Assembly: GCA_937625935.1 (NCBI GenBank)
Contig: OW569358.1
Span: 186,001 to 250,000, forward strand
Reading direction: 5' to 3'
Source: Tetramitus jugosus
Taxonomy: Eukaryota > Protista > Heterolobosea
Length of the DNA: 64,000 nucleotides
Shown: piece after piece, positions 3 through 6,785 of the stretch
How the letters are laid out: every line of letters begins with the position of its first letter
How positions within the stretch are numbered: the first letter of the stretch is position 1
Made by a program: the position numbers and the translations under genes
Notes under the pieces: model-generated
Databases searched by the model: none
What the model saw: only the letters and a program-made list of their open reading frames with translations
What the model was told of the DNA's origin: nothing

Positions 3-1715
3 TTGAAACAACATATTCTAGTTATGGAGAAGGAGTTAGAGAATCGAAAGTCTGACCTACTGAAATCATTTAGTCAGAGAGCTCTTCTTGAAGAAGCTAT
101 AGACAGTTCAACAGAAAAGAATCATGAGGTAGAGGAAAGATTGACTGATATTTTAGCAGAAAAAAGTTCTCATGAAGATACAATCCAGCGTCTCGATTTG
201 TCACTAAGACACACTGAGCAGATTCACAACGAACAGATTCAGAAACTTAGGGCAGAGAATGATGCAACAATCCAACAACTAAATAACTCGATTCAAACAC
301 TCCAAGACGAGAAAACACAGTTTCAGACTCGTCTTGAAAAGAAAGAGCAAGAAACACAGGAATTCAAACATCAACTCGAGGAAGCTTTATCGAACTACGA
401 AAAGTTGAACGATATGATGAATGATAAGGAATTAGAAATGATGAGAGTATCAGAATGTTCAAAGGAGGAGATTAGAGAATTAAACAATGATAACGCTCAA
501 CTTCAAGCACTTGTGCGAGAATCGAGACAGGAGATAGAATCTCTAAAAGAAAATCTGGAGCAACTGAGCCACAAAGACCTTTCTCAAAATGAAAGAGTTA
601 TCAGATATCAAAAGGAAATAGAGACGTTAAAAGCTTCCTACCAAGAATCAGAGAATACGAAGGCCATCTTGCATCAGGAGACTCTTAGTGCCATTAGAAC
701 CGCAGTTCAGGAACTCGAAAACGAGAGAGACAATCTTCGAACACAGCTGGAAAACGAAAGGAGTGACATCACGCGTCTAATGAAAGAATTAGAAGCGTTT
801 AGCCAGAGGGAGAAAGATAATATTGAGTTACAAAACGAGAGAGAAGCAACTTACAAAGAAGAGATCGTTTCTCTGCGAACAACATCCCAAGATCTTAACT
901 ATGAAAGGATTAAACTGGAAAAACGGCTGGAAGAAATTAATCAAAGAGACGAGTCCCAGAATGAAAAAGCAGTCGTTAGTCAACGAGAAATTGAAAACCT
1001 AAAGACTCGTGTGCATGAGGTCCAAGTTGAGCGAAGTGAATTGCGGACAAAAGTTGAAGAGTTGAAGCTGGAGACTGAATCACTTAGGGAAGAGATAGAT
1101 AGAATGAAGCAAAGAGAACAAACTGAGATAGAAGCTCACCAAATGAAAATAGCAAGTTATCATGAAGAAATTTCTCAACTTAAAACTTCTTTACAAGAGA
1201 TGGAAGGCAAGATTAGGACGAAGAAGAACAAGAAGAAATCCAAAGAGACTTCTGAAAGATCGGATAGCACCTCAACGATTTCAATACTTCAACAACAGCA
1301 AGTTCTTCAACAAGTTCAAGCACTTGTTTCTCACATTGAACGAACGAAGCAAGAGAAAGACACCATGAGAATAGCTCTGGACACCAAGGAACAAGAGTTT
1401 TCTATTCTGAAGAAGAGAATCGAACAAAAGGACAGTATTATCAACCTTTTGTACAATCAAATAAGCATCATTAATTCAGTGAAATCGGATCAGGCAGAAA
1501 AGATGCAGGGTGAATTGGATCAGTTGATGCACGTTCTGAACCAGAGCAAAAAGAACTTGATTTCGACACCACGTGGTGGTGGTAGCAGCAACACCAACAT
1601 CAACACCAACAACGAAAAGGTGTTGGACCACAACAATAATGAGAAAGAAAAAGAACAGAATACTCACAATGACGAACACCAAATGAACAACCAACCAGTG
1701 AGCTCCTCTGAATAA
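3..1715 (+). CDS. Long coiled-coil protein, 5'-truncated by the window edge
   Basis: 570-codon open frame from the window start; E/K/Q/L-rich heptad pattern; low-complexity N/H-rich tail. Confidence 0.8.
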   Translation: MKQHILVMEKELENRKSDLLKSFSQRALLEEAIDSSTEKNHEVEERLTDILAEKSSHEDTIQRLDLSLRHTEQIHNEQIQKLRAENDATIQQLNNSIQTLQDEKTQFQTRLEKKEQETQEFKHQLEEALSNYEKLNDMMNDKELEMMRVSECSKEEIRELNNDNAQLQALVRESRQEIESLKENLEQLSHKDLSQNERVIRYQKEIETLKASYQESENTKAILHQETLSAIRTAVQELENERDNLRTQLENERSDITRLMKELEAFSQREKDNIELQNEREATYKEEIVSLRTTSQDLNYERIKLEKRLEEINQRDESQNEKAVVSQREIENLKTRVHEVQVERSELRTKVEELKLETESLREEIDRMKQREQTEIEAHQMKIASYHEEISQLKTSLQEMEGKIRTKKNKKKSKETSERSDSTSTISILQQQQVLQQVQALVSHIERTKQEKDTMRIALDTKEQEFSILKKRIEQKDSIINLLYNQISIINSVKSDQAEKMQGELDQLMHVLNQSKKNLISTPRGGGSSNTNINTNNEKVLDHNNNEKEKEQNTHNDEHQMNNQPVSSSE

Positions 1716-1946
1716 ATACAAGAGTGAGCTCGCGACTGCAAACAGGGAACAAAATAAAAACCTAAAAAATGCTTGTTTATTCATATGATCATCGATGTTG
1801 TAGGAAACTTGAAATAGACAACGCATATAGACCTTGGTGGATGTACAATGGAGAAAGAGTGGCAATAAGTATAAAGGACAAGCCATGTAAGACTGCTAGA
1901 ATATGAGATGAGCTTGAATTGTGTTTGTCATAATGGGAATAAATCA

Positions 1947-2210
1947 TCAGTTCAAGTTCAAGAATGCAGCTACACTGGTCGAAGTGCCATATGCCATCAT
2001 TTTTGGTTTTTGATAATCGGTGGAACAACTGAGAACTGAAGAGTGGATATTGTTTTTGTATTCTACTTCTTCTTCAGAAGAAGAAGAATTGTTGACGAGT
2101 TGTGAGCTCACCATGATGGTGGATTGATTGTTGTTTTCAAAGAGGTGAGTGGAGGATTCTTCATATTCGTCCCTAGTTCTCTTCTTAGTCATTCTGTACG
2201 GGTGATTCAT
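1947..2210 (-). CDS. Small hypothetical protein (87 aa, S/N/E-rich, basic KKRTR patch)
   Basis: ATG in A-rich context (aaaccATG) like other genes here; composition typical of this genome; no recognised domain. Confidence 0.45.
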   Translation of the reverse strand: MNHPYRMTKKRTRDEYEESSTHLFENNNQSTIMVSSQLVNNSSSSEEEVEYKNNIHSSVLSCSTDYQKPKMMAYGTSTSVAAFLNLN

Positions 2211-2294
2211 GGTTTTAGAATTTATTGTATTGTGTTTGACAGGACGACAGTTTTTGGTTTTCGAAAAAAAGAAATCTCGAGCGAAACTAAAACT

Positions 2295-2365
2295 TGCCGC
2301 CTACCGGAATCGAACCGGTGTTGCGGGAGCCACAATCCCGTGTACTACCACTATACTAAAGCAGC
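2295..2365 (-). tRNA. tRNA-His (GTG), intronless
   Basis: Reverse complement GCTGCTT-TA-GTATAGTGGTAGTAC-A-CGGGA-TTGTGGC-TCCCG-CAAC-ACCGG-TTCGATT-CCGGT-AGGCGGC-A folds as a cloverleaf; A73 and no encoded G-1 (eukaryotic type); TTTT a few nt downstream. Confidence 0.96.
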
Positions 2366-2396
2366 TGACATGTAATTCTCCGATATCATCTTTTAC

Positions 2397-2571
2397 ACGC
2401 TTTCGATGTGCGTAACGCTCTCCGAGCGTTACTGAAAGGTAAGACAAGTGCCGCTCTGCGAGCGGCACAATGAGTATAAGTGAAACAAATGGAAAGAATG
2501 ATAAACAATAAAGTGAGCAACTGCGCGTTGTATCAAAAAAAAAAAAAAAAAAAAAACGCTTTCGATGTGCG
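2397..2571 (+). mobile_element. Short poly(A)-tailed retroposed insertion (5'-truncated non-LTR element or SINE-like) with target-site duplication
   Basis: Direct repeat (A)CGCTTTCGATGTGCG at 2397-2412 and 2556-2571 flanks 2413-2555; AATAAA at 2507-2512; A22 tract at 2535-2556 abutting the right repeat. Confidence 0.88.
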
Positions 2572-2873
2572 CAAATGATATTGTTATTGGGCTCATATCT
2601 TCAGGTGTGGGCTAAGAATGCGCAGATTCAACAACACAATGGAGAAGAGTATCTTCTCACCATAATTGTGAGTACAATCACTATTTGTGAAATCTTTGCG
2701 AGAAATGAAAAGTAACGGAGAAAATGCTCGCCGAAAATAAGAGGTTTTGCGCAAAACCCTTCTTTGAAGTTTCGTTTTCTTAGTTCTCAATTCCAGCAGC
2801 TTCTGGATCTGCACGAAACAATTCCTTCTCGGTCCAGCAACAAAATTCACACAAAAAAGAAAGAAGCACACAG

Positions 2874-4605
2874 ATGTCTCACGGGTTCAATATGATGAAA
2901 GGTGGAGGCTTTCCTCCAAGTCATGGCATGATGTCTCAGATCAACATGACCGAGTTGTCTCAAATTTACAATGCAACGTCCTTGGGAACAAGCACACTTG
3001 GTTTGCTCATGTATCCAAACACCTATCTACTCACTCTGAAGTGGTTTATGAACACTGTTGTCGCAGTCATGTTTGGAAACGACTTTTTCGCTGCGGGTAT
3101 CCTTCTCATGATCATAAACTCCATGATTGCCACGGTCCAGAGATTGATCTGGAAAATATTGTCTTTCATGGGCTCAAAGTTTGTCTCTTCTGTTACGATT
3201 CCATCTCATGATGAGTCGTATCAATGGGTTCTGAAATGGCTCTCTCATAAGGGATACACACAATCTTGTCAAGACTTAGAGATTCAATCCTCGTGGAACA
3301 AGAAGGGACGCAAGGCAGGCTTGGAGTATGCAAGGCATAGACACCCTAGACACTCGCTTAGGGAAGATGACAAGAAGCGCCCAGATGTGTTGCTGGCACC
3401 TGCAGATGGAACTCATTTCTTCACATTCAAGGGCAGACTTGTTTGGTTCTACAGAGGTCAACGAAAATCGAGCTCCTTCAACCTAAATCCATTTAATCAA
3501 ATGGGCAATGCTCGATCTTCTTCCAACGATGAGCAGCAGGATATTGTTCTCTACATCATTGGTATTTCTCCCAAGGAAACCCTGTTGTCCATTATCGATG
3601 ATGCATGTGAACTTAACTATCTGAACAAGGACAAGAAGACGACCATCTATACGGCAGCTACAGAATATAGGGGATGCTGGGAGAGCTCAACAGAGAAGAA
3701 CACCAGAGAACTAGATTCTGTCATATTACCTTCTGAAACAAAAGCTGCCATTCTCAATGACATTCAGGCATTTAGAGACAATGAAGAATGGTACAGACAG
3801 TGTGGTGTGCCATATCGACGTGGTGTCTTATTCTACGGACCTCCAGGCACAGGAAAGGTATGAATAGTAACTTTTTTTGTAATTGCATTCCCATTCATGT
3901 ACTGACACCAATATATAGAGTAGTACCATTGTTGCTTTGGCAGGTAAGCTCGAGATGAATGTGTGCATCATTTCTCTTTCATCTCCATCCATGTCGGATG
4001 AACGCTTGCAAGAACTGATGAATCAAGCTCCATTGAACAGCTTGTTTCTATTGGAGGATGTTGATAGCGCATTCAAAACCAGAGAAGAACCTGTTGCTCC
4101 AGTGGATGAACTGAATCGATCCAGATTCCATCCTAGAATGCCCACTGGTGTTACCTTTGCTGGTGTGTTGAATGCTATCGATGGTGTGAATGCTCAGGAA
4201 GGTAGAATCTTGTTCATGACAACAAATCATTTGGACAAGTTAGATCCTGCTCTCATTCGTCCAGGCAGAGTCGATCTACGAATTCATTTCGCTCTAGCCA
4301 CGCAAGAGCAAATCAAAAATCTGTTCATCAAGTTCTTCCCTTCGGAGGTTGAAGTTGCGAGCGAATTGTCACAACTCATCCCAGATCAAACTCTCACACC
4401 TGCACAACTACAAGGATTCTTCTTGGCTCATCGACAGAATCCAAAGGACGCAATCAAAGATCTTCCCCAATTCTTGGAAGAATGTGCAATGCAAAATTCA
4501 AAACCCGAGAACATTAGTGCACCCGTTGTTGTTAAAGAGCCTAAACTCTCAAAAGGTTCCAAACGCATCGCCAAACAAGCCACCGAGGAACATGTAGATG
4601 AATAG
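2874..4605 (+). CDS. BCS1: Mitochondrial AAA chaperone BCS1 (2 exons; intron 3858-3918)
   Basis: BCS1_N motifs (SYQWVLKWL, PADGTHFF), GVPYRRGVLFYGPPGTGK|SS Walker A restored by splicing, LLEDVD Walker B, MTTNH..LDPALIRPGRVD; intron GTATGA...TACTGAC...TAG. Confidence 0.95.
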
Positions 4606-4638
4606 ATATAAAACCACTTCTTGTGTGCTCAATTCTTC

Positions 4639-5682
4639 TTAGGTAGAACTACCTTGCACCAACGCCTTTATTTTATGACCTTCTCTCATCTTTTTCACCA
4701 CACTCAAAATGTATCGCTTGTTCTGATCTGACACTTCCTCTCCGAATATCACTCCCTTTGGTCCCTCCGCGAAAAAGAATTCACCCTTGGACGCCAGATA
4801 GAGAATCTCTGGTGCGTGACCATAGATGGCAATCAAATCTGCAACCACTTCCAAGGCAGCACTATTGCTCTGACTCTTCTCATCCAAGTTGACATAGGGA
4901 ACATAGATGAAATCGTTGCCCCATGCATCCTTGACCTCTACATTGTCCAACAGTGGTGCCTGAAGAGGATGCACACCAGTTTCTGCATGGAGCAACATCA
5001 ATGCCTGATTGGCCAAATGAAGTTGAATCTTTGTGAATTGAACGCGACTCGAAAACAACTTTTGATGGTACAGCGAGGATGTCAGAGAGGAGAAAGTGAC
5101 GAGAATGGAGATGGCAATCAACATTTCAATCAAATTAAAATCATGTTGCTGTTTCATCGATTGTCGCCGCTGTTGCATGTAGTAATGAATTTTTTGTCGA
5201 ATGAGATTGTACAGTCGGTTTCGAATCGTATTATTGGAGGAGGCAGATGATGACGATGATGATGAGTAGTATGAGGAGCATAAAACATAGATTACAATGG
5301 GAGTAGAGCAGGACAGTAATGGAACAATGATGCGCCTTAGAATTCGAACACATTGATGAACAAATTGTTTTACAACGACAATCACGGATGAAGAAGCACT
5401 GTTGTTGCTCATTATTATGGATGATGATGATGATGATGCAATGGAAGGTAATTCGTGATGAAAAGTCTTTCGTTCGTCACTTTCGATCACTGTTCGATAA
5501 TATTGAGTGAATTTGTCTTCGATTTGTTGCATGCACTGAGCATCAATTCTGTTCATCATTTTTCCTGCATTGGCACAACAATTGTCATCATTTCTGGCTG
5601 TGTTAGTATTGTTTTGAGTATTTGTTGTTGTTCTTGTGGTGGAAGATTGTTGAGCAAGTGGATTGATCGTAAAGTGAAACAT
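4639..5682 (-). CDS. gspG: GspG-like type II secretion pseudopilin with long N-terminal extension (mitochondrial T2SS-derived system)
   Basis: Type IV pilin-like helix D-FNLIEMLIAISILV (F+1, E+5) at residue 182, then ALMLLHAETGVHP (cf. ALxxYxxDxGxYP) and KDAWGNDFIY (cf. DPWGNxYxY) of the T2SSG domain. Confidence 0.85.
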   Translation of the reverse strand: MFHFTINPLAQQSSTTRTTTNTQNNTNTARNDDNCCANAGKMMNRIDAQCMQQIEDKFTQYYRTVIESDERKTFHHELPSIASSSSSSIIMSNNSASSSVIVVVKQFVHQCVRILRRIIVPLLSCSTPIVIYVLCSSYYSSSSSSSASSNNTIRNRLYNLIRQKIHYYMQQRRQSMKQQHDFNLIEMLIAISILVTFSSLTSSLYHQKLFSSRVQFTKIQLHLANQALMLLHAETGVHPLQAPLLDNVEVKDAWGNDFIYVPYVNLDEKSQSNSAALEVVADLIAIYGHAPEILYLASKGEFFFAEGPKGVIFGEEVSDQNKRYILSVVKKMREGHKIKALVQGSST

Positions 5683-5748
5683 GTTTGATGATGATGTTGT
5701 TTCTGGTTTTGTGCTTTTATTTTTTTTGTGTTTCTGATTGAAAGCTTT

Positions 5749-6625
5749 TTAGTTTTGCTTGGTTGATTTAGCTGCCTGATTTTGACGATCAGCCAACGTG
5801 AACAATTGTTCGCCAGTGGTGCTCACACTGACTCGTGCTGGAGTATTCTTTGCAACTGAATGACTTGCTGATGGCCCAAGGTTGATTCTTCTGAGCTCTG
5901 GCAACACACTATGTTTGATATGAGAAATATGGACATTAGCATGCCACAAAACAATGAATCATACAAGTTGAACAACAAAAACAAGGTACATACAATTGAA
6001 TTGAAATAAATAATCCCAAAACGAGAAACAAGAGCATAAACACATGAAAGATGGGAACTTTTGGCAGATAATACATGTAAACTAATGATGCCAAAAGAGC
6101 AACCAAGACAACATAAAAGAATGACATGGTTGATGGATGAACAGAGGAACCAGGCTTCAAAATAAAACCAAGAGCTCCTTGCTTTAGCATTGGAACTTGA
6201 TCCAAAAAGCTTTCACTTGTTGTTGTTGTTGTTGTGCTCTTCACATTCGAAGCTTTTGTTGTCTTTTTCTTCAAAGTTTCTGTTGCTGTTGTTTTGGTTG
6301 TAGCTGTTGTTGTTGTTTTTGGTTTAGCTTGTGCCTTGTTGTTTGAGCTCTTTTCTGTAGTGGCGGCGCTGGCGGCAGGAGATTTTGTTGTGCTCGCTGC
6401 GATTTTTTTGTTGTCGGCATTATTTTGCACTTTGTTATTGGTTTGACTCTTGGTCGATGATACAGCGTTTTGATTCTTGTTCGTGGCAGTGGTACTGCTT
6501 GGTGTGGATTGCACGGTCACTGATGATTTGGTAGCAGTGGTTGTTGCTGGAGAAGACTTTTGTGATGTTGTGTTCACTGGTTTCTCATTGTTGTTCTTTG
6601 TGGTCGTCTTCTTGTTCTTTGTCAT
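5749..6625 (-). CDS. Pkr1-like ER membrane protein (V-ATPase assembly factor family) with long T/K/S-rich N-terminus; intron 5909-5993
   Basis: FILKPGSS followed by two TM helices with FHVFML; splicing GTATGT...TAG gives ISIQ-FVLPELRR, resembling the Pkr1 C-terminal pattern. Confidence 0.6.
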
Positions 6626-6785
6626 GATCGTGTTATTGTTGTTGTGCTTTGTGTGAATTTGATTCCGAAACTCTAACAAAGAAAGAAGAATAAATAATTT
6701 CACCGACTTGGAACATGAGATTGATCCTGTTGTCATCTTTGATTATCCTCGAGAAAAAATTTTCATTCAAACACAAAAGAGAATA

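Follow-up and report, generated by a model that had tools for sequence, protein, structure and literature searches.

Mitochondria are thought to have retained few bacterial envelope machines from the last eukaryotic common ancestor onwards, and the mitochondrial type II secretion-derived system (miT2SS) is one of these. Its description in 2021 covered heteroloboseans and other lineages (Horvathova et al., PMC8134430), and the heterolobosean genomes that encode the pseudopilin paralogue GspG2 have a gene set in common that also includes GspD, GspE, GspF and GspG1 (PMC8134430). The GspG1 proteins of Naegleria gruberi and Gefionella are mitochondrial, interact with themselves and bind GspF, and their peptides come only from the region downstream of the processing site (PMC8134430, PMC10128026). 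Here we describe an ORF in a window of 64,000 nucleotides (the whole stretch of DNA analysed, C15:186001-250000 of the 26.35 Mb, 56-contig assembly that was searched) that very probably encodes the GspG2 paralogue of the miT2SS in a tetramitian heterolobosean related to Naegleria and Willaertia but distinct from both.

The protein encoded by this ORF, hereafter the window protein, resembles bacterial GspG (EpsG, 4lw9; PulG, 5wda; PF08334, TIGR01710) in the alpha1 helix, the alpha-beta loop, strand beta1 and the residues F+1 and E+5. It differs as follows: bacterial GspG has Gly at -1 and a short leader, whereas the window protein has Asp at -1 and a 181-residue extension, and the C-terminal strands and calcium-binding loop of the bacterial proteins give way to a eukaryote-specific domain. 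The heterolobosean GspG2 proteins (N. fowleri KAF0975059.1, N. gruberi, Neovahlkampfia damariscottae and Willaertia magna KAL9644266.1) fall in the same clade as the window protein and have the same architecture, with about 30% identity to it over the mature part.

The features of the gene, its neighbours and the partner genes are listed in Table 1. The coordinates of the ORF and the motifs ETGVHP (residues 233-238) and DAWGNDFIY (residues 252-260) agree exactly with the original prediction, as judged from the ORF listing and the translation.

Table 1. Coordinates of the GspG2-type gene, its segments, the adjacent genes and the miT2SS partner genes. Window positions are given unless a contig or locus is named.
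Feature	Location	Strand	Remarks
GspG2-type pseudopilin CDS	4639..5682	-	ATG start, 347 codons, intron-less; single ORF in the ORF listing
TAA stop of the GspG2-type ORF	4639-4641	-	
N-terminal extension, residues 1-181	5140..5682	-	low-complexity, poorly conserved
G2-type conserved motif, residues 44-63	5494..5553	-	ends Y61 Y62; alignment A5
First hydrophobic segment, residues 112-137	5272..5349	-	upstream of the pilin helix; Kyte-Doolittle
Basic linker ('polar anchor'), residues 150-181	5140..5235	-	7 K+R, 1 D+E; ends H180 D181
Pilin helix alpha1, hydrophobic N-terminal half, residues 182-205	5068..5139	-	F+1, E+5
Pseudopilin head to strand beta1, residues 206-265	4888..5067	-	ETGVHP at the YP-motif position; DAWGNDFIY as the DPWG..Y motif
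Eukaryote-specific C-terminal 'novel domain', residues 266-347	4642..4887	-	alignments A1, A5; AF2 models
BCS1-like mitochondrial AAA chaperone gene	2874-4605	+	downstream, convergent with the GspG2 gene
Upstream neighbour, Thr/Ser/Asn-rich protein	5749-6736	-	hydrophobic C-terminal region
GspG1	contig C6, locus L002 1081-2190		Pfam T2SSG 25.9 bits
Nonapeptide RLRILANHI of GspG1	contig C6, L002:1201-1239		
GspF	nonapeptide RLENLMRHI at L006 within 847-2256	-	two T2SSF domains, Pfam 50 bits
GspE	nonapeptide RINVLLKHI at L003 within 2215-2721	-	Pfam T2SSE 74.6 bits
GspE-like second gene	nonapeptide RANTLLNHL at L004 within 1465-2274	-	29.6 bits
GspD-like ORF, 332 aa	contig C14, L008:1294-2292	-	weak Pfam Secretin match, 14.5 bits

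The GspG2 ORF is present in RNA libraries, in metagenome-derived contigs that give neither strand nor expression level, and it contains no intron. A 2.5-kb soil metatranscriptome contig (X10, record 1) contains the spliced junction of the BCS1-like gene and is continuous over 3917 to 5497, a stretch that includes most of the ORF; further RNA contigs, likewise without a joint inside the ORF, extend to 5693-5698. Near-identical DNA and RNA are present in soil, groundwater and hydrocarbon metagenomes. The stop codons of the GspG2 gene and the BCS1-like gene lie 33 bp apart, and a 61-bp GT..AG intron of the latter (3856-3916) is spliced in contigs from four independent soil RNA libraries. The upstream neighbour contains an 85-bp GT..AG intron (5909-5993) that is spliced in an RNA contig from one library. 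Since both neighbours carry spliced GT..AG introns and the GC content of the GspG2 gene (0.38-0.44) is similar to that of the adjoining sequence, the gene belongs to the nuclear genome of the host and is not a bacterial contaminant. The stop of the upstream neighbour is separated by 66 bp from the GspG2 start codon, so that the promoter and 5' UTR of GspG2 must be either very short or overlapping with that gene. No synteny was seen with the metagenomic relative P0003.

The architecture of a mitochondrial GspG is complete in the window protein: an extension, a polar anchor, a helix with E+5, a pseudopilin domain and a novel domain, the last of which is shortened in the window protein and its closest relatives (82 residues in the window protein versus roughly 100 aa). 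The extension presumably directs import and sorting and is then removed as the protein matures. Ser, Thr, Asn or Gln account for 73 of its 181 residues, with Ser/Thr/Asn tracts, and this composition, together with the spliced introns of the neighbours, bears out the description of a typical host gene with poly-S/T/N tracts. No typical mitochondrial presequence is evident in the window protein; predictors reportedly fail on heterolobosean Gsp proteins. Within the extension, the tyrosines Y61 and Y62 are invariant in alignment A5, which includes N. fowleri GspG2 (P0018) and P0011, and inspection by eye shows the YxxYY pattern in the N. gruberi GspG2 sequence from the literature as well. Further downstream, the first hydrophobic segment, where the Kyte-Doolittle mean over 19 residues exceeds 1.5 at residues 123-128, aligns to hydrophobic stretches of P0001, P0003 and P0018.

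In the pilin helix, FNLIEMLIAISILV, residues F182 and E186, both contained in the FNLIEM of the translation, occupy positions +1 and +5 when aligned to bacterial G|FTLIE. A class III signal needs Gly at -1 and is cut and N-methylated by the prepilin peptidase (GspO, Peptidase_A24). The hhalign alignment places Asp (D181) opposite the bacterial -1 Gly, and the His at -2 is invariant in alignment A1. Thus, in the class III pilin-like helix that had been proposed, F+1 and E+5 are borne out, but the class III signal is not, given the Asp at -1 and a score below the cut-off of the corresponding NCBIfam model, TIGR02532 (14.9 vs 16.3 bits).

Curated profiles do not recognize the ORF on its own. A Pfam scan of the ORF alone produced neither a T2SSG nor an N_methyl match, and its sole Pfam match, SR-25, was judged spurious; in the NCBIfam scan of the ORF alone, the score for TIGR01710 (gspG) was, like that for TIGR02532, under the threshold (16.6 bits vs a cut-off of 88.85). 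Searches of the PDB sequences, by phmmer with the ORF and separately with a four-sequence profile, returned nothing useful. A word-indexed search retrieved three relatives of the ORF (43-69% identity), all metagenomic, one of which is annotated as PulG by JGI. When a profile built from the window protein plus its three nearest relatives (hereafter, the window clade) was compared by hhalign with a profile of 48 bacterial GspG-like pseudopilins, the two matched with a probability of 99.4% (E 8.1e-22) over 89 columns, corresponding to residues 177-265. The profile comparison that had been suggested as a check therefore succeeded for the clade profile against bacterial GspG, but not for the ORF alone against T2SSG and N_methyl. 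The bacterial profile is 153 columns long, and the match reaches only as far as column 106; the bacterial C-terminal beta2-beta3 strands with the calcium-binding loop (consensus S.G.DG..G......DI in alignment A4) have no counterpart in the window protein.

Across 78 GspG sequences from eukaryotes and bacteria, six columns reach a conservation of at least 90%, and the window protein keeps all of them: E+5, an I, the P of the YP motif and, within the DPWG..Y motif, D, W and Y. In alignment A2 (78 sequences), 62 sequences pass Pfam T2SSG and 44 pass N_methyl. A broader search, with a profile of the window protein, its relatives and the second genomic copy, was run against 1.84 billion representatives (E up to 1e-3) and yielded 414 matches. 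The first approximately 30 are long proteins of the eukaryote type that cover both the pilin and the C-terminal domain, and comparison by eye showed some of these to be identical to eukaryotic GspG sequences already in the literature; the later matches include hundreds of proteins of 110-170 residues that cover profile positions 3-90 only. On the evidence of the sequence profiles, residues 177-265 of the window protein are homologous to bacterial GspG; the resemblance exceeds chance because the profiles match at 99.4% and all six near-invariant columns are retained. In the sense of the curated models, the window protein is outside bacterial GspG: it scores below the cut-off, and the calcium loop, the prepilin peptidase and a Gly at -1 are all missing.

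Structure prediction agrees with the sequence profiles. The AlphaFold2 model of residues 172-347 (pLDDT 86.9, pTM 0.73) starts with a 52-residue helix that extends to residue 235; after a loop comes a short strand (residues 259-261), and the novel domain then consists of two helices, a beta-hairpin and a further pair of helices. Foldseek found no match to this model in the PDB at E up to 0.001. In an exhaustive comparison with 48,161 chains using VIA-align, the top match was Vibrio cholerae EpsG (4lw9_A; Z 7.5, rmsd 3.0, 82 residues), aligned across model residues 36-149 of the window protein; PulG scored Z 6.0, and pilins occupied ranks 1-16. These Z values are middling, and their weight lies in the agreement of the fold search with the sequence profiles. 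The window protein is thus predicted to adopt a type IV pilin fold, as the AlphaFold check proposed for it had anticipated. The best structural match of the model of the GspG1 paralogue from the same genome is also EpsG (Z 7.3), and in both models the alignment runs through the hairpin, in G1 to 196. In our reading of the G1 and G2 models, the eukaryote-specific domain would occupy the place of the missing bacterial strands, and both high-confidence models suggest that this domain packs onto the pilin head. Complex prediction for mature G1 and mature G2, run without controls, gave a score of 0.01, a value that counts neither for nor against an interaction.

The window protein was placed among eukaryotic GspG sequences in a maximum likelihood tree of 39 rows (IQ-TREE, LG+C20+F+G4 PMSF), in which the G1/G2 labels of P0008, P0015, P0018, P0019, P0021, P0025 and P0031 come from by-eye comparison with published sequences. 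Eukaryotic GspG, including the window protein, is monophyletic and separate from the bacterial sequences (support 100/99). A heterolobosean G1 clade (100/99) includes the copy on contig C6, whereas the window protein belongs to a G2 clade (99/97) with N. fowleri G2 (P0018), Neovahlkampfia G2 (P0019) and Willaertia G2 (P0017). Within the G1 clade, Naegleria and Willaertia together form the sister group of the host, and Neovahlkampfia falls outside these three. The assignment to GspG made in the original prediction is upheld by the tree and by hhalign; the generic label has to be narrowed, however, to a divergent GspG2 paralogue.

Independently of the tree, the extension, which is otherwise unalignable, has YxxYY and the upstream hydrophobic segment in common with the Naegleria-type G2. 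The genome contains exactly two GspG loci, the window ORF and the contig C6 copy, as found with N. fowleri G2, the ORF and Pfam T2SSG as queries. A search for a third, canonical G2 turned up a single extra candidate, a stop-ridden chance match (E 0.009), which was rejected. The contig C6 copy, the host's own GspG1, scores above the Pfam T2SSG cut-off and is 61-63% identical to the Naegleria and Willaertia G1 over the mature part. It has the same domain order as the window protein and 41% identity to it over residues 173-265 (E 5e-16), but keeps KDPWG and the full novel domain where the window protein has DAWG and a shortened domain. Compared with the other heterolobosean G2, the window clade has DAWG for DPWG and His for the aromatic residue of the YP motif; compared with both G1 and the other G2, it lacks the helix that starts at a conserved 'DW' after beta1, and its last helix is shortened. 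Supplementary Data 1 of Horvathova et al. 2021 (PMC8134430) contains none of three motifs searched for, namely, the helix motif of the window protein, DAWGNDFIY and the helix motif of the G1 copy.

The known relatives of the window clade come from metagenomes only. In the gene call of the closest relative, P0002 (L010:564-1271), which is 77% identical over the mature part, the pilin helix is preceded by just 25 residues; the call is truncated, or else that strain can do without the long extension. The same protein has a 26-residue Ser/Thr-rich insert after beta1.

The stem of the window clade measures 2.0 substitutions per site, versus 0.2-0.6 for other clades. This length makes the position of the clade less safe, and the tree software flags the placement of long rows as unsafe. 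The window clade could, accordingly, be an older, separate GspG lineage that appears G2-like through long-branch effects, with the canonical G2 having been lost, and a tree with the clade outside heterolobosean G1 plus G2 was not rejected (AU p 0.16). We nevertheless regard this reading as very unlikely: the G2 clade is recovered at 99/97 under a site-heterogeneous model, the tyrosine motif and the hydrophobic segment of the extension link the window protein to Naegleria G2, and the one other GspG in the genome is clearly a G1. Joining the window clade to G1 was rejected (AU p 0.023). The window protein is, hence, most likely the G2 orthologue within the eukaryotic GspG family, as the tree and the motifs of the extension suggest.

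Partner genes for a GspG2 were sought in the same genome, as had been recommended, and predicted GspD, GspE and GspF were all found, together with a GspE-like second gene; GspE and GspF exceed the Pfam cut-offs. The two ORFs of GspE, with a short gap between them, probably flank an intron, to judge from the ORF layout. The GspD assignment combines a weak Secretin match with a by-eye reading of the C-terminal motif: the last approximately 70 residues of the GspD-like ORF are almost identical to the tails of published mitochondrial GspD. Most of this ORF is Gln/Asn-rich and of low complexity, and its secretin module is far shorter than that of any bacterial secretin. A search of the genome for Peptidase_A24 (prepilin peptidase) gave no match at E up to 1, while its control was positive in 12 of 14 genomes; the earlier study did not find GspO either (PMC8134430). 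The GspG2 candidate co-occurs, then, with predicted GspD, GspE and GspF in one nuclear genome, and the claim that this organism retains the miT2SS is supported: besides GspG1, GspE and GspF, the genome encodes the GspE-like protein and an ORF with a GspD-like secretin tail. The original prediction was to be given up should a pilin fold or profile match and GspD, GspE and GspF prove missing; a predicted pilin fold, a profile match and candidates for the three genes are all there.

The mature part of GspG2 is under strong purifying selection. Among near-identical soil RNA contigs, residues 182-347 show eight substitutions, every one of them synonymous, and TAG replaces TAA as the stop codon, whereas the extension shows seven non-synonymous and four synonymous changes along with in-frame indels. 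The dN/dS of the mature part is about 0.05-0.12 against P0002 and P0003, and that of the extension about 0.7 against P0003, rough figures given that dS is near saturation in these comparisons; for the C-terminal novel domain, dN/dS is about 0.12. A decaying relic, a chance ORF with a pilin-like helix or a bacterial contaminant could account for the missing direct Pfam match and the low-complexity N-terminal half, but such an origin is extremely improbable. A pseudogene or a chance hydrophobic helix is contradicted by this low dN/dS and by the exclusively silent variation of the mature part, and contamination by the GC content, which matches the neighbours, by the flanking GT..AG introns spliced in RNA, and by the tree, in which the protein groups with eukaryotic and not with bacterial GspG.

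The other predicted Gsp proteins of the host have a feature that the window G2 clade lacks. An N-terminal motif, [RK]-x3-[LIVM]-[LIVMAFST]-x-[HQ]-[LIVMF], which resembles a PTS2 signal, occurs within the first approximately 40 residues of the host's own GspG1, GspE (RINVLLKHI), GspE-like protein (RANTLLNHL) and GspF (RLENLMRHI), and is followed by x-P. It was also found in 14 of the eukaryotic GspG matches scanned (P0001-P0031), with 4 of the 14 fitting the strict PTS2 pattern, and lay away from the N-terminal region only once. In the window G2 clade, this nonapeptide (R-x3-L-L-x-H-L type) is absent. The nonapeptide is visible in published Gsp sequences of jakobids and malawimonads. The main text and the accessible supplement text of PMC8134430 contain no mention of it, and a literature search found no other paper on the motif. 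Pex7-like proteins, Gcp1-3, co-occur with the miT2SS (PMC8134430). The nonapeptide might be an import or sorting signal read by Gcp1-3, and the window G2, having lost it, a re-purposed pseudopilin, for instance at the tip or as a minor subunit, with a different way into the organelle; we consider this scenario rather unlikely.

The G2 of the window lineage underwent a burst of change, seen in the long stem, the trimmed C-terminal domain and the loss of the nonapeptide, and was conserved thereafter. This pattern points to a modified but still used role. One way to explain it, unlikely in our estimate, is that the protein is a true descendant of GspG2 that changed its job and serves not as the polymerising major subunit but as a minor or tip pseudopilin or an adaptor. 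Such a change would fit the rapid evolution of the stem followed by strong conservation, the deletion of the helix after beta1, a C-terminal domain shorter than in G1 and the other G2, and the missing nonapeptide, which 14 GspG matches and the host's own GspG1, GspE, GspE-like protein and GspF all carry. To our knowledge, eukaryotes have no GspH-K, so the role of a minor or tip pseudopilin would be vacant. Against a changed job stands the retention of E+5 and of all near-invariant GspG positions; in bacteria, recruitment to the assembly platform depends on E+5 (cited in PMC8134430).

As a GspG2 pseudopilin of the miT2SS, the favoured reading, the protein would be made as a precursor and imported into mitochondria, where the hydrophobic helix would anchor it in the inner membrane and the basic linker would face the matrix. 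By analogy with the described systems, it may be cleaved near H180/D181/F182 by a protease other than the prepilin peptidase and unrelated to GspO, after which GspF and GspE would add the mature protein to a pseudopilus in the intermembrane space, beneath the GspD pore.

Because the miT2SS has been known since 2021, including from heteroloboseans, the GspG2 described here is a new, divergent member of that system and not a new kind of system, and the overall picture of the miT2SS is unchanged by it. What it adds is the full core set of GspD, GspE, GspF, GspG1 and GspG2 in a further heterolobosean, one that is apparently common in soil and groundwater. The G2 variant, with its burst of change and subsequent strict conservation, also shows which positions are indispensable to a mitochondrial pseudopilin, namely, E+5 and, in the head, P, D, W and Y, and which parts it can do without: the tail helix, the PTS2-like nonapeptide and the helix that follows beta1. 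The models of the two paralogues, in which the novel domain is predicted to sit on the pilin head, may serve as a starting point for structural work.
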